A stretch of 64,000 nt of DNA from NCBI GenBank assembly GCA_950097015.1, contig CATNEN010000011.1, forward strand, positions 3,162,001-3,226,000, written 5' to 3'. Positions 7,455 through 45,415 of the stretch are shown here, piece by piece. The translations under genes and the position numbers were made by a program. The stretch comes from Macrostomum hystrix. Taxonomy: Eukaryota > Animalia > Platyhelminthes. Under the pieces are notes generated by a model. The model was not told the DNA's origin. It saw nothing but the letters and a program-made list of their open reading frames with translations, and made no database searches. Each line of letters begins with the position of its first letter. Positions within the stretch are counted from its first letter, which is position 1.

Positions 7455-15022
<7,568 letters not shown>

Positions 15023-30840: not shown

Positions 30841-31500
30841 CAAGTGAGCTTTATATTATAAAAATGACTCAAAAAAATTAGTCGGATTTCTGACTACTAG
30901 TACAACAAAACCACGGATCCTCAATATTCCAGTTGTTCAGTTGAAGTTTAAAGAATTGAAACAAATATTGAAGCTGTTGAATACTGTTGGAAGCCGACAT
31001 GCGAAAAAGTGTTTAAGGAATGGGAAAAGCAATGGTGCGAATGCAGTTAACAGATCTGAAGTAGGTATCTTTTCTCCAGGAGATTGGTGGATCCCTCTTT
31101 TCTCAGACATCAAAACAAAATCACAGGCTACATTTTCGATAATTCTAATTTAATAATCATGCGGATATGATTGACATCACTAATGGCGCGGAACAGTGTG
31201 TCTGATTGTATAATAATCAGCATATGATCGGCATGGGGATAAGTATTGCCAAATAAGAACCACAAGCGCTATATTGCCGAGTAAAAAAACTGGGCGCTGC
31301 AAAAACACACTGTAATTAAATGATCTTTAGGAGGATAAAAAAATATGACAATATTGATCATGAAAGTGCATTCATTAGTTAAAAGGGTCTCGCCAAATGA
31401 GTGTCATTTTGTGGTGTCAAACAGTTACAAATATTGCTTACTCTCTAAAAGCAATTGCTTTGTACTGTTTATTATGTCAGAGCCGCAAGTACCACACTGG

Positions 31501-31830
31501 TCAGTCTTTCGACCCGGTAAATAGGATCCTCACAGGCGAACTGGAAAGTACAATTACATGCTGAAAATGCGAATTTGTGTTGGCCTCGCCGCAGCACTGG
31601 GCATTTTTCCAGACGGAACTCAAGCTGAAGTGTCCTATGAGCTCTCCACATCTGTTGAGAAGCATCATTGAGCCATCCCTTTTTGGGGCGGCTATGATTC
31701 CTGAGCCCAATGTGCTCAAAGCTATCAAACTATTGCCTATCGACCACAGCTACCGGAATCTATTTGAATAGAGATCTAAGCGATGCACGGCACTGGGTGT
31801 AGAAACCAGAAGACTTCTTCGACTTTCCAC
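31501..31830 (-). pseudogene. 3' fragment of a zinc-finger/coiled-coil/propeller cluster paralog
   Basis: Homologous to the 3' end of 32635-34170; in-frame TAG at 31750-31752; truncated at 31830, where the duplicated block starts. Confidence 0.8.
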
Positions 31831-32634
31831 AGGAGAGACAAGAGACCAGTAGACAGTTGAGACACGGGAGATTCTCACTTTACTACCCAAAGTTAAGCAG
31901 CCTACTGTGCTAGGCCTACAAGTAGGCTAGGGCCAGACTTAGGAGCATCAAAGGCCGCACCTGGCCGAGGGGCCACATTTTACCGGTTCCTGAGCTAGAC
32001 AAATCACCAGCACGACTTGCTGGGAATCGTGAACAACTTACTATTCTGGATTAGAATTTGGGTTTAGTAACAACATTTTCATAATTAGGATTGTCCAACG
32101 GTCAAGCTTCGATCACTGGTGTGCTTAATGCTAAATTTTAAAGTGGTAATATGAAGAGCAAAGCATTAGTCAAAAAGAGCTTAGTACTAAAAACAGGAAT
32201 AAATATTGACGAAAAGTTGTGTGGTCAGCGAAAACCATTGTTAGCATTCAGTACTGAGACTGGGCACCGACACCTTAAAAACGGTGCACTATCATTGAAA
32301 GAAAGCATATTTGCAGAAATAGTTTCCAATTGTGCAAATCACATCGCCTAAAAATAATCAGAGCTTAAAAAATTGGCATTCGGACATTTTAAACAACGTG
32401 CCTATTTTGCCCAAAAGAAGAGAAATAAAGAACGCCGCACATATTAGACCAAAAGCTAGGATAAAGTATGCGCCAAAAAATCTGTAGTCATCTAAAATAC
32501 ATTAATTTGAACGTAGTAATAGTAAGCATAAAGAGTTATTTAAAAAGAAAAAAATCTATAAGCGTTTCTTTAAGTGGCTTTTTGTGGTGTCACACCAACA
32601 ATTACAAAGCTCGCCAACTCTTGCCTTCTACAGT

Positions 32635-34170
32635 TTATTGTATTAGAGCCGCAAGGAAGAGAATAACTTTATAACAGCACTTCCTCGACGCGGAAAATAG
32701 GATCCTCACAGGCGAACAGGAAAGTACAATTACTTGCTGGAAATACAAATTTTTGTTGTCCTTGCCGCAGCACTGGGCATTTTTCCAGACGGTACTCAAG
32801 CTGAACTGTCCTATGAGCTCTCCACATGTGTTGAGAAGCATCATTGAACCATCGCTTATTGAGGCGGCTATGATGCCTGAGTCCAATTTGTTCAAAGCTA
32901 TCAAATTATTGTCCAACGACCACAGCTGCGAGCAACTTCTTGAATAGAGGTCTAAGCGATGCACGGCACTGGGTGTAGAAACCACAATACTTCTTCGACT
33001 TTCCACAATCAGACTATTGGCACCGTTGACGCCAGTCAGGGTGATGCTATCCTGCAGCTCGAGACTTTTCAGTGACAAAATGACCACTTGACTTTGGTCG
33101 AGAATATACAGCTTCTCCATATCGTGCGTCATCCTTGAGGGTCTTCTAATCTGCAGCTTGTCCATTGTCTGTAGAACGGTGCCAGCCAAGTCGGTCACAG
33201 TCAAAACCAAATTGCTTCCAAGCATGAACAGCTGCTGCAGGTGACTGACGCATAAGCCCGAAACCAGCTGATTAACATTTCCTGGAATTGGACAGGAGCT
33301 CAGTGTGGCGAGAGTGGATTCATTGTAGAAGCTGAAGGTCGAGCTTGCGCCATATGCGCTGAAAATCACAATGCACTTCTCTGGTAGCGGCTGCATTCCA
33401 GTAGACAGAACTTTTGAAACAGAACGCCCATCATAGAAGAATCCATCAGTTCGAGTGCAGAGACACGCAGACAGTAACACAGATTGTGGGTTCAATGAAA
33501 TGCTCGCCTTCATGACCGGAGTGGTTTTAATATGATTCGATACCCGCAGATCTGCGTCCTCCACTTTGGCAGTCAATTTGCTCACAGAATCCTGAAGCCT
33601 ACTCAGTGATTCGATTGCCCCGTCTGTGGCGTAGTTAATTTGGCTCGGCTGTATGGGAATTTCTTTATTCAACATCTGAAGCTCCATCCTGAGCCGCAGA
33701 CTGCTCACGAGATCGTTTGCGACCTCCGCTGCTTTGATATCAGCTGACAGGGTCTCAAAAATACTCAGAGATCTCAGGCTCTGCTCCACATCAGCGATCT
33801 TTGAGTCCAGTTGACCGAGCACCTTCTGTCTGCACTGCTGCACTCTCTCAAAAATGGCGTCAAACATGTCGGCTTCGTCAGCTCTTGCAGTGAGCAGCTC
33901 AAAATGAGCACCACTGGCATTCTTCTGCAGTTCAGTGACCTTGGCCAGTGGCGCGTCAGTCTCCTTCTTGACCGCGTCTAACCGCTGCTGGAACTGTTGC
34001 TCATCCAATTTCAGATGGTCGGAGCAGAGAAGACCGTCCCAGTAGAGACCGCGGCCAGAGGCACCTCTCTCACAATGGCGCAGGCTGCATTTCTCAGCCG
34101 ATTGCTGCTCTTTGTTCTCAATATTAATATTCTCTGAGGCCATGGCTGGAACGAGTAACGGCGTGTTCAT
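32635..34170 (-). CDS. Cluster paralog A: C-x4-C-x15-C-x2-H finger, coiled coil, predicted beta-propeller (TRIM-NHL-like without RING), 511 aa
   Basis: Intact single-exon ORF; clear homology to 38560-40050 and 43508-45031. Domain names are inferred from sequence pattern only. Confidence 0.75.
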   Translation of the reverse strand: MNTPLLVPAMASENINIENKEQQSAEKCSLRHCERGASGRGLYWDGLLCSDHLKLDEQQFQQRLDAVKKETDAPLAKVTELQKNASGAHFELLTARADEADMFDAIFERVQQCRQKVLGQLDSKIADVEQSLRSLSIFETLSADIKAAEVANDLVSSLRLRMELQMLNKEIPIQPSQINYATDGAIESLSRLQDSVSKLTAKVEDADLRVSNHIKTTPVMKASISLNPQSVLLSACLCTRTDGFFYDGRSVSKVLSTGMQPLPEKCIVIFSAYGASSTFSFYNESTLATLSSCPIPGNVNQLVSGLCVSHLQQLFMLGSNLVLTVTDLAGTVLQTMDKLQIRRPSRMTHDMEKLYILDQSQVVILSLKSLELQDSITLTGVNGANSLIVESRRSIVVSTPSAVHRLDLYSRSCSQLWSLDNNLIALNKLDSGIIAASISDGSMMLLNTCGELIGQFSLSTVWKNAQCCGKDNKNLYFQQVIVLSCSPVRILFSASRKCCYKVILFLAALIQ

Positions 34171-35838
34171 TATTTTTAGTAACGAAGAGTGAATTAAGAA
34201 AACTGAACCAGATTGACCTGACTAATAATAAATTTACAAAGTTGAATTAACATAATTACTACATAACATAATTACTAATTAACATAAATACTACAGCGGT
34301 CAAAACAGTGATAAAAATTGGTGTGCTTAATTGTAAAGTTAACAAACTACAAAACGAAACAATTATCTAATAAGAAAGCTTTAATAACTATTCTATTAAA
34401 GAAAATAAAACGTGTATTTAAACAGCTGTCAAACGTTAACTACTTTGTGATTGTTGACACAAACTACAATAGGCAGAAGAGAAACTAAAAAACGGTTTAT
34501 CCTCCATCAAATTCGAAGCACCTACATGGAATTTTCCTAAACTAAATAACTAAACTAAATAAAGCTTGTTAAAGTTCTGGTTTCTTGAGGCTAGCAACGG
34601 GTTTTAGCCTTGTCTAGCAATAGGATACATTAGCGTTAAGTTGCAGCAGCGGTGACTTTTTGCGCTTTGTAACTCGTAGCCAACTTCAGTGATTCGCGGT
34701 TCAGTTTGTCAATTTGTGGATTATAATTTTCTCATCAAATGAGAATACGTGCAAGAACTCTGTGGACACAGGCTAAGTTGAAAAGCAGGACCACTGAGCT
34801 TGCAGTCTCCACTGATACGCTAGAACTCAAAACTCAAAGCTCAGACAGTAACACAGTTTGTGGGTTCCACGAACTGCTCGCCTTCATGACCGGAGTGGTT
34901 TTAATATGATTTGATACCCGCAGATCTGCGTCCTCCACTTCGGCAGTCAATTTGCTCACAGAATCATGAAGCCTACTCAGCGATTCGATTGTCCCGTCTC
35001 CCTCACAGATGTGAGAGAGAGGAGAGATGATACAGGAGAGACAAGAGACCAGTAGACAGCTGAGACACGGGAGATTCTCACTTTACTACCCAAAGTTAAG
35101 CAGCCCTACTGTGCTAGGCCTACAAGTAGGCTAGGGCCAGACTTAGGAGCATCAAAGGCCGCACCTGGCCGAGGGGCCACATTTTACCGGCTCCTGAGCT
35201 AGACAAATCACCAGCACGACTTGCTGGGGATCGTGAACAACTTACTATTCTGGATTAGAATTTGGGTTTAGTAACAACATTTTCATAATTAGGATTGTCC
35301 AACGGTCAAGCTTCGATCACTGGTGTGCTTAATGCTAAATTTTAAAGTGGTAATATGAAGAGCAAAGCATTAGTCAAAAAGAGCTTAGTACTAAAAACAG
35401 GAATAAATATTGACGAAAAGTTGTGTGGTCAGCGAAAACCATTGTTAGCATTCAGTACTGAGACTGGGCACCGACACCTTAAAAACGGTGCACTATCATT
35501 GAAAGAAAGCATATTTGCAGAAATCGTTTCCAATTGTGCAAATCACATCGCCTAAAAATAATCAGAGCTTAAAAAATTGGCATTCGGACATTTTAAACAA
35601 CGTGCCTATTTTGCCCAAAAGAAGAGAAATAAAGAACGCCGCACATATTAGACCAAAAGCTAGGATAAAGTATGCGCCAAAAAATCTGTAGTCATCTAAA
35701 ATACATTAATTTGAACGTAGTAATAGTAAGCATAAAGAGTTATTTAAAAAGAAAAAAATCTATAAGCGTTTCTTTAAGTGGCTTTTTGTGGTGTCACACC
35801 AACAATTACAAAGCTCGCCAACTCTTGCCTTCTACAGT

Positions 35839-37448
35839 TTATTGTATTAGAGCCGCAAGGAAGAGAATAACTTTATAACAGCAGTCCCTCGACCCGGTAA
35901 ATAGGATCCTCACAGGCGAACAGGAAAGTACAATTACTTGCTGGAAATACAAATTTTTGTTGGCCTTGCCGCAGCACTGGGCATTTTTCCAGACGGTACT
36001 CAAGCTGAACTGTCCTATGAGCTCTCCACATGTGTTGAGAAGCATCATAGAGCCATCGCTTATTGAGGCGGCTATGATGCCTGAGTCCAATTTGTTCAAA
36101 GCTATCAAATTATTGTCCAACGACCACAGCTGCGAGCAACTTCTTGAATAGAGGTCTAAGCGATGCACGGCACTGGGTGTAGAAACCACAATACTTCTTC
36201 GACTTTCCACAATCAGACTATTGGCACCATTCACGCCAGTCAGGGTAATGCTATCCTGCAGCTCGAGACTTTTCAGTGACAAAATGACCACTTGACTTTG
36301 GTCGAGAATATACAGCTTCTCCATATCGTGCGTCATCCTTGAGGGTCTTCTAATCTGCAGCTTGTCCATTGTCTGTAGAACGGTGCCAGCCAAGTCGGTC
36401 ACAGTCAAAACCAAATTGCTTTTAAGCATGAACAGCTGCTGCAGGTGACTGACGCATAAGCCCGAAACCAGCTGATTAACATTACCTGGAATTGGACAGG
36501 ATTTGGCAGGTGACTGACAAATAAGCCAGTGGTTTGGACAGGATTTGGCCAGGTAATTTGAACATTACCTGGAATTGGACAGGAGCTCAGTGTGGCGAGA
36601 GTGGATTCATTGTAGAAGCTGAAGGTCAAGCTTACGCGATTTGAGCTGAAAATCACAATGCACTTCTCTGGTAGCGGCTGCATTCCAGTAGACAGAACTT
36701 TTGAAACAGAACGCCCATCATAGAAGAATCCATCAGTTCGAGTGCAGAGACACGCAGACAGTAACTCAGTTTCTGGGTTCAATGAAATGCTCGCCTTCAT
36801 GACCGGAGTGGTTTTAATATGATTCGATACCCGCAGATCTGCGTCCTCCACTTCGGCAGTCAATTTGCTCACAGAATCATGAAGCCTACTCAGCGATTCG
36901 ATTGTCCAATCGTTAATTGGTCTGGGCGGTATGGGAATTTCTTTATTCAACATCTGAAACTCAATCCTCAGCCGCAGACTGCTCACGAGATTGTTTGCGA
37001 CCTCCGCTGCTTTGATATCAGCTGACAGGGTCTCAAAAATACTCAGAGATCTCAGGCTCTGCTCCACATCAGCGATCTTTGAGTCCAGTTGACCGAGCAA
37101 CTTCTCTCTGCACTGCTGCACTCTCTCAACAATGGCGTCAAACATGTCGGCTGCGTCAGCTCTTGCAGTGAGCAGCTCAAAATGAGCACCACTGGCATTC
37201 TTCTGCAGTTCAGTGACCTTGGCCAGTGGCGCGTCAGTCTCCTTCTTGACCGCGTCTAACCGCTGCTGGAACTGCTGCTCGTCCACTTTCAGATGGTCGT
37301 AGCAGAGAAGACCGTCCAAGTAGAGACCGCGGCCAGAGGCAACTGTCTCACAATGGCGCAGGCTGCATTTCTCAGCTGATTGCTGCTCTTTGTTCTCAAT
37401 ATTAATATTCTCTGAGGCCATGGCTGGAACGAGTAACGGCGTGTTCAT
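35839..37448 (-). CDS. Cluster paralog B, near-identical to A; interrupted by an 83-nt insertion (36486-36568) that is either a frameshift or a new intron; 508 aa if spliced
   Basis: ORFs 36405-37448 and 35839-36429 are the two halves. Removing 36486-36568 restores PGNVNQLVSGLCVSHLQQLFML as in paralog A. Confidence 0.65.
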
Positions 37449-38559
37449 TATTTTTAGTAACGAAGAGTGAATTAAGAAAACTGAACCAGATTGACCTGAC
37501 TAATAATAAATTTACAAAGTTTAATTAACATAATTAAGTTACTACAGCGGTCAAAACAGTGATAAAAATTGGTGTGCTTAATTGTAAAGTTAACACTGAT
37601 ATTGCGTTGATAAAATTAGCAAACTACAAAACGAAACAATTATCTAATAAGAAAGCTTTAATAACTATTCGTTTAAAGAAAATAAAACGTGTATTTAAAC
37701 AGCTGTCAAACGTTAACTACTTTGTGATTGTTGACACAAACTACAATAGGCAGAAGAGAAACTAAAAAACGGTTTATCCTCCATCAAATTCGAAGCACCT
37801 ACATGGAATTTTCCATTGACAATACTTTGCTGCGCCTGAGCGGAACAAAGCATGAGATAAAAAACTAGGTACCGAAAAAAACTGGAATAAATAAATTTGT
37901 GCAAAAAGTTGAGTGGTCAGCAAAAATCATGGCAGACAATCACTACTGATATTGGGCACCGGCCCCTTTAAAAATGTGTACGGGCAGTATATTGGTAAAA
38001 CAATAAACTTAGACTGACAAAAACTCATTTCAATGAAAAATGTGAAAAAAGTACAGCAAAGACAGCACCAAATTATGAGCAAAGCGACGTAGAGATTCAA
38101 ATAAACAAAGCAGAAATTGACAGCAGCTACAATAAAACAACTGATTTTTATCAAAAATGTGATTTGATATAAACTCGAAAATCTGGAAATATGTCAGCAC
38201 AGCCTAAATAGATTTTCAAAAATAGATGTCACAAGAAACAGTAGAATAATCCAATGAATTCGCTCTCAATAAAGCACTAAAAACAAAGGACAGCAATAAT
38301 AAAGCTGGAAAGCTAACAAACTACAAGGACAGCTTGGTGTTACACGTGTCAATTGTTAAATACTTGTAATTCAATTCCTAATAAAACAAACTAAATAAAG
38401 CTTGTTAAAGTTCTGGTTTCTTGAGGCTAGCAACGGGTCTAGCAATAGGATACATTAGCGTTAAGTTGCAGCAGCGGTGACTTTTTGCGCTTTGTAACTC
38501 GTAGCCAACTTCAGTGATTCGCGGTTCAGTTTGTCAATTTGTGGATTATAATTTTCTCA

Positions 38560-40050
38560 TCAAATGAGAATACGTGCAAGAACTCTGTGGACACAGGCTA
38601 AGTTGAAAAGCAGGACCACTGAGCTTGCAGTCTCCACTGATACGCTAGAACTCAAAACGGACTGAGCCACAGTGGTGGTGCCACAGATCGGACACCAATT
38701 AACGTAATTTAGGCCTAGCTTTACTAAATCAATGTCTTTAGCTTTTTGCCCGTTGCTGCTTAGAATTGCGCCATTTCCTGAGGCTTCACAGACGACCGAA
38801 AATCCAAAGCCGATAGCTGCAGCACACAGATTAGCGCTGTCGCTTAGCTTCAGTGGTCTCTTTGTGCTCAGACTCATCCGATATACGGCTGACGGCGTAG
38901 CGATAAGCAAGCTGCGACCTGACAGTGTCACATCACGGGCATCTTTCATTTCGTCAGGCAGTTTAATACTTTCCTGCAGCTCCAGATTCTCAATAGACAG
39001 GCAGTTGACGATGCCATCAGTGAGAATGTACAGCTTAGAACAGTCATTAGTCAGGCTCGGCGACGCTCCAAACTGTACATTCTCTACAGTTCGCAACTGA
39101 GTGCCCGTGAGATCAGTCACAGTCACGGATTGGTTGTTACCAAGCAGGAATAACTGCTGCAGATGATTGACAAGTTGAGCGGACACCAGTACGACTCCAT
39201 TGTTCGGCACATTCCACTGGCTGAGAATGGCCATTTCCAGGCTGCAGATGACAAAATACCAGTTTTGCGAATTATTCGCAACAGAAATAGTGCACACACA
39301 AGGGAAAGCTTGAAATCCGTTTTCATGTGTCCTGGACACAGCTTGGGCGGCGTAGTAGTAGCCCTCAGTTTTGTTGCACACAGCCAAACAGACATAACCT
39401 ACATTTATCAGATTGACGGTCTTCACAGCGGCAACACAGGATTCTAGCCTACTAATGACGAATTGTACTTCAGAATCTTCAGCTTCAGTGCCCAGGGTTT
39501 CCACAGCCGTCTGCAGTCTAGAAACCAGAAGCACGCTGCTGTCAACTGGATCAATCCAATTGTCAGTGACTGGAGCATCCTCCAGCGAGATCTGCACCTC
39601 CTGATGCAACCGGAATCCTTGTCGCAGATCGTCATCGGCTTCGGCCCGGTTTATTTCGAGGCTAAGCTTCTCAATAAAACCGAGAGATCTCAGGTTCTGC
39701 TCCACTTCCGATATCTTTGAGTCCAGTCTACCGACCACCTTTTCTCTGCATTGCTGCACTCTTTCTAAAATTTCATCGAACAGGTCGGAAACATCGGCCC
39801 GGTCGCTTGTCAGCTCAAACAGAGCACTTCTGTTGGTGGCAATCAGCTCGCTGATTTTTGACAATGGAATGGCATTCTTTTCTTTTATGTCAGCGTATCT
39901 TTCATTAAATATGCACTCATCCTTCGCCAGGTGACGCTCACAGAGCGGGCCATTCCAGAATTTGCCTTGGCCAGACGACACCTCGGGGCAGTGGGACATG
40001 CTGCAGCATTTCTTAGCCCCAAGATTATCGTCACTACCTTTAGTTGACAT
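38560..40050 (-). CDS. Cluster paralog C, 496 aa
   Basis: Intact ORF; shares CSxxxC..G.G..W.GPLC..HL..D, LFELTSDRA, RLDSKI, LVNHLQQLFLLGNN with A and D. Confidence 0.78.
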   Translation of the reverse strand: MSTKGSDDNLGAKKCCSMSHCPEVSSGQGKFWNGPLCERHLAKDECIFNERYADIKEKNAIPLSKISELIATNRSALFELTSDRADVSDLFDEILERVQQCREKVVGRLDSKISEVEQNLRSLGFIEKLSLEINRAEADDDLRQGFRLHQEVQISLEDAPVTDNWIDPVDSSVLLVSRLQTAVETLGTEAEDSEVQFVISRLESCVAAVKTVNLINVGYVCLAVCNKTEGYYYAAQAVSRTHENGFQAFPCVCTISVANNSQNWYFVICSLEMAILSQWNVPNNGVVLVSAQLVNHLQQLFLLGNNQSVTVTDLTGTQLRTVENVQFGASPSLTNDCSKLYILTDGIVNCLSIENLELQESIKLPDEMKDARDVTLSGRSLLIATPSAVYRMSLSTKRPLKLSDSANLCAAAIGFGFSVVCEASGNGAILSSNGQKAKDIDLVKLGLNYVNWCPICGTTTVAQSVLSSSVSVETASSVVLLFNLACVHRVLARILI

Positions 40051-40316: not shown

Positions 40317-42372
40317 TATAGCGCTTCAAGTTTTATGTCTCTTCTTCTTCACTTGTAGTTTCCTATAGTTTGTCTAGCGGTTTATTGCAGTCTAAAAGTC
40401 TTGAAGGCTATAACTCCTAACGACTATCGATACTCCGTATACCGGCTGGTCGTATTGATCTCTTTAGATCGTTATCGCTGATTCTACTTAAGAAAGAACG
40501 CAAACACAATGATTTTCTAGTTTATCAAAACGGAGCTCAAAGCGAGTCTCTAACTAACTGGAGCGGCGAATCTTTTTCCGCGCTCCGCACCGATATATAT
40601 AGTGTTTTTAAAACCCCTCGATCCGAGGGGGAGATAATACCATAGCAACAGTACGCATGGGCATTTGGGGTGAGTGAGGTCGCAGCCTCGAGTCTAGTAC
40701 AGTTATTGTCATTAAACTAGTTGGTTGGCAGGCACGCCAACCCCTTTTCTTTCATCGATCCCGCCTTCTTGTGCGGACTCGGCCTCCTCTCGATCTCGTT
40801 CCCGATCGGGTCCGGGCGGCTCCAGTTTCTGCTGGGTTGGGTCGATGCAGGCAGCTGCAGGTCGGGGTAGGCCGGGTTGATTCCGGGAGCTCCACGTCAG
40901 CACAGCTGCGTTCCGGTCTCGGGCCATTCCACGTCAGCACAGCTGCGGATCCGGTCTCCGGCAGCTCCACGTCAGCGCCTCTGCGGATCCGGTCTCGGCC
41001 AGCTCCACGTCGGCACAGCTGCTGTCATGCCGAACCGGGCCTGCGCTGAAATGAATAGTTGATCTCTGGGGGCGGATTTTGTCTAATCATTCTCCTTTCG
41101 GTTGCTCGCACTTTCTGCTGTTGCTATTTTTAGTTTTAGTTACCAACTAACGCTCACTTAAATTCCATTCAGATTTCTAAGTCTTATATCATCCCCCTTT
41201 TGAAGAAATCCTTGACTGGTCAAGGGAGATGTAGCCTATTGTCTTAATCGAGCTGCTAATCGGCTTACTACTAGTAGATCTGTGAACATATAAGACGTTT
41301 GAAATCTGATACTTGATGAAAACGAAATCAATAAATGTATTTGACCTGCACCGTAGATAAATATAGTTTTACTTATAAATTATAGAAGTGCGGGTAGTAA
41401 CCATCCAGTAGTGGCACCTGGTATTTGTCCCGGTAATGACGCCGGAAACAATCAATGGTGGGCCACTGCCTGGTGGTGGGCTCGGGCCGATACGTGGTCT
41501 CTGGTGGCCACGTGCCTTGCACTTGTCTTGCGGGGTAAAAATCCTCTAGGTAGCATTCTCTCAGGTCGGTTGTCGACGTGGCGATCGTCAGGCCGCCATC
41601 AATCTCCTCCTCGGCCACCTGAGTGCTCGCGTCGGCCTTCAGGACCGGCCGCCCCCGGATGTCCACGTCAACAAACTTCTGGCCGGGGCGGCGGTCGTAG
41701 TCTCGGTTGGCCATCGCGCTGGAAAGGTTGTCCAATATAGGTGGCTTTCCTAGGCGTTTTTCTTTTATTCCTTAGGTTATTCTCCAGGTCTTCCTCGAAT
41801 TGCTGAACTGTCTACTGTTAGTGAGTCTGTGAATATATAAAACGGTGAAATCTGAGATTGATCCCGTTATTTAATCCCTACTGGATATGATATATTAGAG
41901 TAATTAATAAATATGGCCAGTTAGTTTTTTATCGTTATTTAAGCGTCCTGTATGCTGCGCCAGGCTTCAACTTGATATTGGAGTCGGTTGCGCCACCAGG
42001 CCAGTCGCCCCGACGCCCAAGCCTTGGCTTGGCGAGCGGCGCTACGGATGACGCATTTCATCCAATAGCCCCGACGCCTTGTGGCCGATGGTGTGTCGTC
42101 GGGCCAACTTTCCTCCACGAACCTCTCCAGCTCCGTCAGCTCCGGCAGCTCCACGTCAGCGCCTCTGCGGATCCGGTCTCGGCCAGCTCCACGTCGGCAC
42201 AGCTGCTGTCATGCCGAACCGGGCCTGCGCTGAAATGAATAGTTGATCTCTGGGGGCGGATTTTGTCTAATCATTCTCCTTTCGGTTGCTCGCACTTTCT
42301 GCTGTTGCTATTTTTAGTTTTAGTTACCAACTAACGCTCACTTAAATTCCATTCAGATTTCTAAGTCTTATA
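40317..42372 (-). mobile_element. Internally deleted LTR retrotransposon derivative: full 3' LTR 40317-41188, truncated 5' LTR about 42139-42372, no gag/pol
   Basis: Direct repeat about 40956-41188 vs 42139-42372; polypurine tract AAAAGGGGGATGA (minus strand) next to 41188; 5-bp TSD CAACA (40312-40316, 42373-42377); removal restores a SINE. Confidence 0.85.
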
Positions 42373-43507: not shown

Positions 43508-45031
43508 TCAGTAAATTGTAATACGCGAGAGAACGCGGTGACCACAAGACAGAGAAAAAAGTAGCAGAAAAGAGCATGAGAAATCTCGGCTGGAGCCAGT
43601 GCAACTGATGGACTGAAAAGTGTAAGAGACACCACAGCTGGCACAGGCCTTGAAATAATTCACTCCAAGCCGAACGAGATCGATAACTTTGACTATCTGC
43701 CTATTGCTGCTAATAACAGCAACGCTGCCGATACTGTCACAGACCGCAACGAATCCAGAGCCGATATTTGCGACGCAGAGCAAATTGGGAGCATTGCTCA
43801 GCCACAGCTTCACAATTCTCTTCGTACTCAGGCTCAGTCGGTAAACAGCTGAAGAAGTGCACAGAATCAGACTGCGTCCTGAAACTGTCAGACTGCGAAC
43901 GTCCTTCGCGTCGTCCGGGAGCTTCGTTGTTTCCAGCAGATCGCACAACTCCAAAGACAGACAATTCACAGCGCCAGCATTGAAAATGTAGAGCTTTTCC
44001 ATATCGTGCGACATGATCGGCTTATCTACTTCGAAATCAATGTTATCCACCGTTTTAAGCTGCGAGCCAGCCAAGTCACAAACAATCAACGACTTGTTGT
44101 TCCCTAACAGAAACATCTGCTGCAAATGGTTGACAAGCGAGCCAGACACTACCGTAACTCCGTTTGATGGCATATTCCACTGACTAAGAACTACCAGCTC
44201 GGTACTATAGAACGCGAAAAACATGTTCGCTTTATGGTGACCAACAGCCAATATACAAGGACTAGGCAGTGGTTGGTAGCCGTTCTGTTGTGTCTTGGAC
44301 ACCGATTTTAACGAGCAATAAAACCCATCAGTGTTCGTACAGTGAAACACAAACTGAATGTAGTTTAGCAGTTGCACCTTCACGTCAGGTGTTGATGACT
44401 CCAGCGAAGTCCTCAAAGCCGTGCCATCCGTATCCTCGGCAATGCCTGCCAGAGTCTTTGTCACCTGAAGCAGTTTTTGAACGAGCTCGACGCTGTTATC
44501 CACGGGATCAGTCCAAGTCTCTGGTATCGGTGCATCGTCAAGAGCCAGCTGCATCTTTTTGCTCAACTGGAAGCTGTTTACCAGATCTCCCGCAGTTTCA
44601 CTCTCATTTATGTCGGTTCGCAGTTTTTCAAAGAAGTGTAAAGATTTTAAATTTGATTCCATTTCGTCAATTTTAGCGTCTAAGCGGCCAATCACAATGT
44701 CCCTGCAGTGGGTCACAATCTCTAGGATCTCTTCGAACATATCGGACGCGTTGGCTCGATCGCTAGTCAGCTCAAACAGAGCGCCTCGCGTCAGATCCAT
44801 GTGATCTGCAACACGCCGCATGGCACCGTCGAGGGTCGACTGTCGATACGTGTAGTAGCTTTCGCGAAAACGGTCCTTGTCGCGTTTTAGATGGGCGGCG
44901 CACAATGGGCCGTCCCAGTGGCTGCCCTGCCCAGTGGCTGGCTCGCTACAGTTGGGCAGGCTGCATGCGCCTCCTTGCTCCAACTGTTTTGGAGAGTCGC
45001 CCTTGGCGTTCGACTTACGTGAAGAAGCCAT
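43508..45031 (-). CDS. Cluster paralog D, about 507 aa (true start probably MASSRK at 45031)
   Basis: Intact ORF with the same motifs. The ORF-track extension to 45184 runs into SINE sequence and is probably spurious. Confidence 0.78.
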   Translation of the reverse strand: MASSRKSNAKGDSPKQLEQGGACSLPNCSEPATGQGSHWDGPLCAAHLKRDKDRFRESYYTYRQSTLDGAMRRVADHMDLTRGALFELTSDRANASDMFEEILEIVTHCRDIVIGRLDAKIDEMESNLKSLHFFEKLRTDINESETAGDLVNSFQLSKKMQLALDDAPIPETWTDPVDNSVELVQKLLQVTKTLAGIAEDTDGTALRTSLESSTPDVKVQLLNYIQFVFHCTNTDGFYCSLKSVSKTQQNGYQPLPSPCILAVGHHKANMFFAFYSTELVVLSQWNMPSNGVTVVSGSLVNHLQQMFLLGNNKSLIVCDLAGSQLKTVDNIDFEVDKPIMSHDMEKLYIFNAGAVNCLSLELCDLLETTKLPDDAKDVRSLTVSGRSLILCTSSAVYRLSLSTKRIVKLWLSNAPNLLCVANIGSGFVAVCDSIGSVAVISSNRQIVKVIDLVRLGVNYFKACASCGVSYTFQSISCTGSSRDFSCSFLLLFSLSCGHRVLSRITIY

Positions 45032-45074
45032 TAAGCTGCAACAATGACATGAGTAGAATGAAAAACATTGAACC

Positions 45075-45415
45075 CGCACTGTAATAATAATAATTGCAGG
45101 AGTGACACTAGACCCGCAGCCAGCAAGGAGGCAATTCTGCCCATTTCGCTGACTCCTGAGCACACACGCACTGTACGCAGGCATATGCTCACGCAGGTGT
45201 GTACATCTGATCTGACTTCCTCATCGTCAGGCAGTGTACATTTAACTGTGCTTTGGAGGTTGGCCCTTGCCAACAAGGGCGTAAATTGCACGACAAGCCC
45301 CCAAGCCTTCTCTCCGCGGCTGCGCACCAAATAAATGTGGGCCTCACCGTAGAATCGAACTTAGGGACCGTGGTGCGAGAGGCAAACGCGATAACCGCTC
45401 TGCCACCGACCCCCC
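45075..45415 (-). mobile_element. SINE family 2 (tRNA-like head, stem-loop 3' region, ATT-repeat tail). Other copies at about 3215-3590(-), 15263-15586(+), 22235-22600(-), 23460-23640(+, partial), 40165-40316 plus 42373-42445(-, split), 57908-58250(+), 61253-61395(-, partial)
   Basis: Recurrent GTGGCAGAGCGGTTAACGCGTTTGCCTCTCGCACC...GATTCC head and GGGCAGAATTGCCTCCTCGCTGGCTGC tail. Confidence 0.85.

Follow-up and report, generated by a model that had tools for sequence, protein, structure and literature searches.

Tandem paralogs and the insertion in paralog B

In the free-living flatworm Macrostomum hystrix, the 64,000-nucleotide stretch of DNA analysed here (the window, positions 3162001-3226000 of contig 11, to which all positions refer unless a contig is named) contains a tandem cluster of single-exon genes of ~500 codons each, on the minus strand between 31 and 46 kb. 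The members of the cluster and the parts of paralog B are listed below.

32635..34170, minus strand: paralog A; intact 511-aa open reading frame without the insertion, GGA at the site
35839..37448, minus strand: paralog B; split by an 83-nt insertion
36569..37448, minus strand: putative exon 1 of paralog B, 880 nt; zinc-finger motif, coiled coil and start of the propeller
36486..36568, minus strand: the 83-nt insertion, a candidate GT...AG intron delimited by the A/B alignment; phase 1, in a Gly codon
35839..36485, minus strand: putative exon 2 of paralog B, 647 nt; remainder of the beta-propeller, original frame open
38560..40050, minus strand: paralog C, 496 aa; uninterrupted at the homologous site
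43508..45184, minus strand: paralog D, 558 aa; uninterrupted at the homologous site
34842..34999, minus strand: dead family fragment between A and B; 96% identical to B and 94% to A
31400..31831, minus strand: dead 3' family fragment downstream of A; 82% identical, with an internal stop

No significant Pfam family was found for A to D. In the structural model of A (pLDDT 71), a small Cys/His motif is accompanied by a coiled coil ~150 residues long and, at residues 230-460, by a beta-propeller of WD40-like form, and a fold search returned generic WD40-like propellers alone. The only outside relatives found in a protein word search with A were hypothetical proteins of M. lignano, at 37-42% identity. 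A 582-aa paralog of the family on contig 3 (5980445-5981644) begins with a RING-finger motif, which is absent from A to D, and the RING at the start of this paralog suggests a TRIM-like layout for the family.

The two dead fragments (31400-31831 and 34842-34999) adjoin A and B directly on their downstream sides, which points to turnover of the cluster by birth and death. The stretch upstream of A (34523-34833) matched paralog C at its 3' end and flank (38361-38658) with 93% identity, and the sequence suggests that the A and B units may have been pasted in by staggered segmental duplications. Between C and D, a 233-nt repeat of 100% identity was present at 40956-41188 and 42140-42372, 1.2 kb apart.

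The first-pass annotation of this window had described B as the near-identical twin of A interrupted by 83 nt, whose removal as a GT...AG intron would restore the frame, and the alignment confirmed both points. Paralog B differed from A by a single 83-nt insertion at 36486-36568, with the rest aligning end to end. On the coding strand, the insertion starts with GTAATG (36568) and ends with TTCCAG (36486), and its removal restores the frame exactly, joining 880 and 647 nt into 1527 nt, that is, 508 codons plus a stop. The junction falls in phase 1 within a glycine codon, for which A has GGA and B the synonymous GGT. With the insertion retained, the frame is shifted and the open reading frame stops 54 codons on, for a total of 347 aa.

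Origin and polarity of the insertion

The insertion is organized around a 24-nt direct repeat and the filler that separates its two copies (the slash marks the splice border here and below).

36561..36584, minus strand: upstream copy of the 24-nt direct repeat; holds the AG/GT of the would-be 5' splice site (donor 6.6 bits)
36502..36560, minus strand: filler between the repeat copies, 59 nt; mosaic of local copies
36478..36501, minus strand: downstream copy of the 24-nt direct repeat; holds the AG/GT of the would-be 3' splice site (acceptor 5.0 bits)
36441..36462, minus strand: exonic source of a 22-nt filler segment, copied at 36506-36527 with 20/22 identity

The two copies of the repeat are perfect and spaced 83 nt apart, so that AG/GT stands at both borders of the insertion. 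Both copies also bear on the GGTAAT of B, which had been set against the GGAAAT of A: the difference itself stands, but the T cannot be counted as part of the insertion, since both repeat copies carry it and it must therefore predate the event.

The filler was then compared with the 60-nt flanks. Words of at least 7 nt from these flanks covered 38 of the 59 filler nucleotides, as against 3.4 in shuffled sequences, and none of 2000 shuffles reached 38 (P < 0.0005). The insertion is thus a mosaic of local templates in both orientations, as had been proposed, and all of the motifs listed for it earlier were present: TCCTGTCCAA occurs twice within the insertion, the copy beginning GGCTTAT..GTCAGTCACCTGC is 20/22 identical to 36441-36462, and ATTACCTGG is present in inverted form. 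Among the pieces, a 9-mer is an inverted copy of the splice-site region and a 10-mer is a direct copy of the first part of the repeat; a direct 7-mer plus 13-mer (the 22-nt copy) comes from exon sequence lying 40-61 nt downstream, and a 16-nt piece is present in two places, within the filler and across the border between the filler end and the downstream repeat copy. The inverted piece and the last bases of the upstream repeat make up a perfect palindrome, CCAGGTAAT-6 nt-ATTACCTGG, and palindromes of this kind are the product of snap-back synthesis (PMC11292364). The filler differed from its sources by 4 mismatches in 36, exceeding what A/B divergence would allow, which points to sloppy, low-fidelity synthesis and not to later decay.

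On this evidence, the 83 nt are very probably a repair scar that was templated locally and includes a 24-nt duplication. We suggest that, after the duplication which separated A from B, the young paralog B would have suffered a DNA break that was repaired in an error-prone manner. Both break ends would have retained the same 24 nt, producing the short tandem duplication, and would have been joined via the 59-nt filler, which may have been made in several short rounds on templates within ~60 nt of the break. One of these rounds would have been a snap-back copy, creating the palindrome. By accident, the duplicated 24 nt would have held the best AG/GT of the gene, and the resulting scar would form a complete intron-like unit, CAG/GTAATG ... 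pyrimidine-rich TTCCAG/GT, of 83 nt in phase 1.

The pathway may have been polymerase-theta-type end joining or microhomology-driven template switching. The pattern of the scar fits either and does not identify the enzyme; replicative template switching would leave the same scar. A family-A polymerase gene resembling Pol theta was located on contig 41 (2607617-2609230); when its polymerase part was compared with solved structures, the best relative was human Pol theta (2.6e-60, vs 3e-39 for Pol nu). A second, weaker family-A polymerase locus was observed on contig 2 (~4650145-4653794).

Three other explanations for the presence of the 83 nt in B were weighed against a repair scar. The first, that the 83 nt arose in assembly or polishing and are absent from worm DNA, takes its plausibility from the way in which the genome (220,453,370 bases in 42 contigs) was produced: Wiberg et al. 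2023 assembled PacBio reads of pooled worms, purged haplotigs and then polished (PMC10468722), and the genome search found no second haplotype for comparison with the B region. Public RNA-seq, Iso-Seq and genomic reads exist for the species (PMC10468722). However, long-read errors take the form of small indels and not of 83 nt of ordered mosaic in which a 24-nt repeat and a 9-bp palindrome are both perfect, and the sequence neighbouring the insertion aligns cleanly to A. An artefact is therefore improbable.

A second explanation is that an old intron was lost from A, either by deletion between the 24-nt repeats or through a reverse transcript. Recombination between the repeats would indeed delete exactly 83 nt and leave an A-like sequence. 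However, the homologous site is uninterrupted in A, C and D, in four other paralogs and in three proteins of M. lignano, and loss would consequently require a gain, a loss and an extra T-to-A change in A; moreover, the body of the candidate consists of copies of the adjacent exons, the mark of a fresh insertion. Loss is thus very unlikely, and the earlier claim of gain in B, and not loss elsewhere, is upheld: by this comparison, the insertion is the derived state in B. The third explanation, a mobile element (introner, MITE or SINE) with a target-site duplication, would account for the direct repeat flanking the insert but was ruled out, its probability being negligible, because the 83 nt occur once in the 220-Mb genome (the other match being the 22 nt of the insert's own local source), a 24-nt target duplication would be far too long, and the body of the insert is local exon sequence.

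The age of the scar was bounded by A/B divergence. Synonymous divergence (dS) between A and B was 0.036 overall and 0.036 and 0.035 on the two sides of the insertion, which sets the limit on its age. Even if the insertion were as old as the A/B split, a perfect 24-nt repeat would be expected with a chance of ~40% at this dS, and the identity of the two copies therefore gives no tighter date. The insertion is derived in B, but its description as newborn is accordingly less well supported than had been claimed.

A gene-conversion breakpoint at the insertion was considered and rejected. The BLAST identities on the two sides differed (98.8% on the 3' side vs 91.9% on the 5' side) while dS was equal on both, and site-by-site counting attributed the gap in identity to three indels and extra nonsynonymous changes. 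Over 31829-37814, A and B differed by 47 substitutions in 1518 nt of coding sequence vs 9 in 1146 nt of flanking non-coding sequence, and their synonymous divergence (0.036) likewise exceeded that of the flanks. The substitutions were clustered: the 17 nt of 36628-36644 contain 5 of them, for instance, and the 15 nt of 35884-35898 contain 4. Possible causes of this pattern of divergence are diversifying selection, mutagenic repair and patchy conversion by other paralogs; outgroup polarization of the five-substitution cluster at 36628-36644 was ambiguous.

Splice signals of the candidate compared with the genome's own introns

To provide a standard for the candidate splice sites, a model was built from introns inferred from exon-by-exon Pfam matches to CCT chaperonins and myosin heads. 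There were 42 such introns, and the 32 with unambiguous borders were kept, a small training set. In these 32 introns, the donors followed MAG/GTRAGT and the acceptors were C/T-rich and G-poor, ending in YAG/G. The shortest measured 67 nt and the longest 2270 nt, and 8 of the 32 fell in a short class of 67-128 nt.

The candidate donor, CAG/GTAATGT, scored 6.6 bits, which is the 34th percentile of the 32 real donors and within the top 1% of 291 exonic GT decoys. The candidate acceptor scored 5.0 bits, at the 22nd percentile of the real acceptors and in the top 5% of 327 AG decoys. The length of 83 nt falls within the short class, above the 67-nt minimum, the exon context CAG/GT is the consensus of this genome, and the last 30 nt are typical in both pyrimidine and G content. 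By signal and size, therefore, the unit would make a credible short intron or proto-intron. Before the insertion, B would have contained only 3 AGGT sites in 1527 nt, so that a random 24-nt duplication would hold the best of them with a chance of ~1.4% (1.4-4% for any AGGT). A coincidence of this order is what survival by splicing would predict.

Other features of the candidate bear against efficient splicing, foremost among them a hairpin over the donor.

36549..36572, minus strand: hairpin over the candidate donor; perfect 9-bp stem with a 6-nt loop, in which donor positions -4 to +5 pair with the inverted filler copy

The hairpin was predicted at -12.9 kcal/mol, forming in 94% of the ensemble (z = -5). 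The predicted accessibility of the candidate donor, as mean unpaired probability, was 0.11, below that of 31 of the 32 real donors, the remaining one being even less accessible at 0.06. Stems over a 5' splice site hinder the binding of U1, as is reportedly the case for the stem-loop at the 5' splice site of SMN2 exon 7.

The composition of the candidate was exon-like, its GC content of 44.6% vs 46-50% in the exons of B giving no contrast between intron and exon; real introns averaged 41% GC vs 56% in their flanking exons, and short ones ranged from 24 to 44%. Of the branch-like motifs, CTRAY was absent and YTNAY occurred once, as CTTAT, whose branch A lies 37 nt before the 3' end; a YTNAY was found 8 to 50 nt from the 3' end in 23 of the 32 real introns. 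At 36439, 47 nt beyond the candidate acceptor, there is a competing one that scores equally well and whose use would shift the frame.

State of paralog B and comparison with known systems

We next considered whether B has the appearance of a functional gene. Omega between A and B was 1.14 for exon 1, 0.40 for exon 2 and 0.83 overall, with the exons counted separately and the junction codon left out. Exon 2 of B contains no stops and no indels, but its omega of 0.40 comes from 12 changes, is not significant and includes change in both lineages, which leaves it no power to speak for the function of B. When replacements were polarized with nine outgroups, 7 were derived in B and 4 in A. Those derived in B include W44L (window position 37318), the loss of a conserved Trp in the zinc motif, and G318K, in which a tandem GG-to-AA change at 36422-36423, lying 62-63 nt downstream of the scar, replaces a conserved propeller Gly with Lys. 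Judged from the alignment, these two replacements are a mild sign of relaxed constraint in B, and not proof of it.

Taken with the splice signals, these observations fit best with a repair scar that is unspliced or only partly spliced, to which we would assign an even chance. B would then be a just-disabled or decaying copy carrying a proto-intron and not an established intron, and its decay would fit with W44L, G318K, the overall omega of 0.83 and the two dead family fragments in the cluster. Some splicing of the candidate is as probable as its absence, whereas substantial splicing is rather doubtful.

The alternative is that the scar is a true newborn spliceosomal intron, arising from AG/GT duplication in break repair, which the U2-type spliceosome removes from most B transcripts to give the full 508-aa protein. 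The exact restoration of the frame upon GT...AG removal argues for this reading, as do the donor, acceptor and length within the range of real introns, the consensus CAG/GT protosplice context, the typical pyrimidine and G content of the 3' region and the chance of only 1.4-4% that a random duplication would hold AGGT. Exon 2 is also intact (omega 0.40, 12 changes, not significant), and the mechanism is documented in other systems (PMC3265369, PMC4974935, PMC4202315). Against it stand the donor's place in the hairpin predicted at -12.9 kcal/mol, the exon-like GC content, the competing acceptor at 36439 and the B-derived W44L and G318K. In addition, no M. hystrix protein for A or B was returned by word searches of the protein collection with A (511 aa) and a 171-aa piece spanning the site, or by exact look-ups of eight ORFs from the window; this absence is weak evidence, as M. 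hystrix transcripts may not be part of the collection. An artificial AGGT duplication, moreover, was only 6-16% spliced in human cells (PMC3265369). Removal of the scar from most transcripts is accordingly a tentative reading, the less favored of the two. By the same tentative measure, the scar may be a working intron no older than 3.6% synonymous divergence, with splice sites, likely branch region and pyrimidine tract all derived from exon copies within 60 nt.

The closest known systems are intron gains by tandem duplication of AGGT (the Rogers model), exemplified by ATP2A1 (Hellsten et al. 2011, PMC3265369) and the potato RdRp gene (PMC4974935). As in that model, an AG/GT of a coding exon was duplicated in B, the upstream GT and the downstream AG bound the unit, and the peptide is unchanged on removal; as in ATP2A1, the site lies in phase 1 in a Gly codon. 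Unlike in those cases, only 24 nt are duplicated in B, the other 59 nt being patchwork filler and not a plain exon copy. In addition, splicing was measured for ATP2A1 and potato RdRp (6-16% for the re-enacted duplication), whereas the B candidate is known from sequence alone.

Neointrons of Daphnia pulex have been explained by staggered breaks that underwent error-prone repair (Li et al. 2014, PMC4202315). The B insertion resembles them in being a short insertion into an exon, with a direct repeat shared by its two ends and significant repeats inside it. In Daphnia, the repeats at the ends measure 4-12 bp and a source is known for only a minority of the inserts, whereas the B repeat is 24 nt long and approximately two thirds of the insert could be traced within 60 nt. 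The Daphnia introns are backed by transcripts and population data, in contrast to the single genomic sequence in which B was found.

Most templated inserts are shorter than ~30 nt, and the 59-nt filler of B, which would have required several rounds, is at the long end. In other respects the scar resembles polymerase-theta end joining, for which templated insertions, including those made by snap-back synthesis, are described (PMC7165422, PMC11292364, PMC5466332): the filler is copied from near the break, in direct and inverted orientation and imperfectly, and there is a palindrome at the junction. Small tandem duplications have also been attributed to CST/Pol alpha-primase fill-in of 3' overhangs followed by end joining (Schimmel et al. 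2021, PMC8355091). These resemble the event in B in that tens of bases are duplicated at a break, with both ends keeping the same stretch, but they mostly arise by clean classical end joining, whereas B carries a long templated filler.

B can also be compared with a young frameshifted pseudogene in a tandem family. The insertion is not a multiple of three and the unspliced frame ends after 54 codons, dead family fragments lie beside A and B, and two conserved residues have been lost in B. Unlike an ordinary frameshift, however, the insertion has a matched donor, acceptor and length that undo the frameshift exactly.

The birth of introns is a long-standing question for which fresh, mechanistically readable cases are few, and the mutational step in B is unusually legible, comprising a 24-nt duplication and a 59-nt filler that is traceable to its neighbours. 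If it is spliced, B would be a new and unusually clear example of intron gain by AGGT duplication and break repair as known from ATP2A1, potato RdRp and Daphnia; if it is unspliced, B is an ordinary young pseudogene with an instructive scar. Should the scar prove to be a working intron, it would be the first case in a flatworm in which an intron born by break repair has been traced in full to its sources, and would offer a concrete answer to the question, raised in Daphnia, of the origin of neointron sequence and of the repeats within it. The donor hairpin suggests that snap-back synthesis, in making scars of this type, can also be an obstacle to their splicing as introns, and this effect would bear on the frequency with which repair scars turn into introns.

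Further observations concern other parts of the window and genome. At window positions 8001-12000, adjacent 2-kb blocks showed opposite and very strong GC skew (-0.27 in the first, +0.47 in the second), and both strands carry long ORFs that overlap; the region resembles low-complexity or satellite sequence. On contig 1 (24631158-24676011), near-identical fragments related to the family, with one TGA each, recurred at a spacing of ~10 kb (24655610, 24665627 and 24675643); a propeller piece appears to be embedded there in a large tandem repeat. A 3' exon of the myosin head (profile positions 542-679) is present in four identical copies on contig 8 (3473156-3512846), spaced ~8 to 16 kb apart and downstream of one myosin gene; these could be a tandem array or alternative exons.
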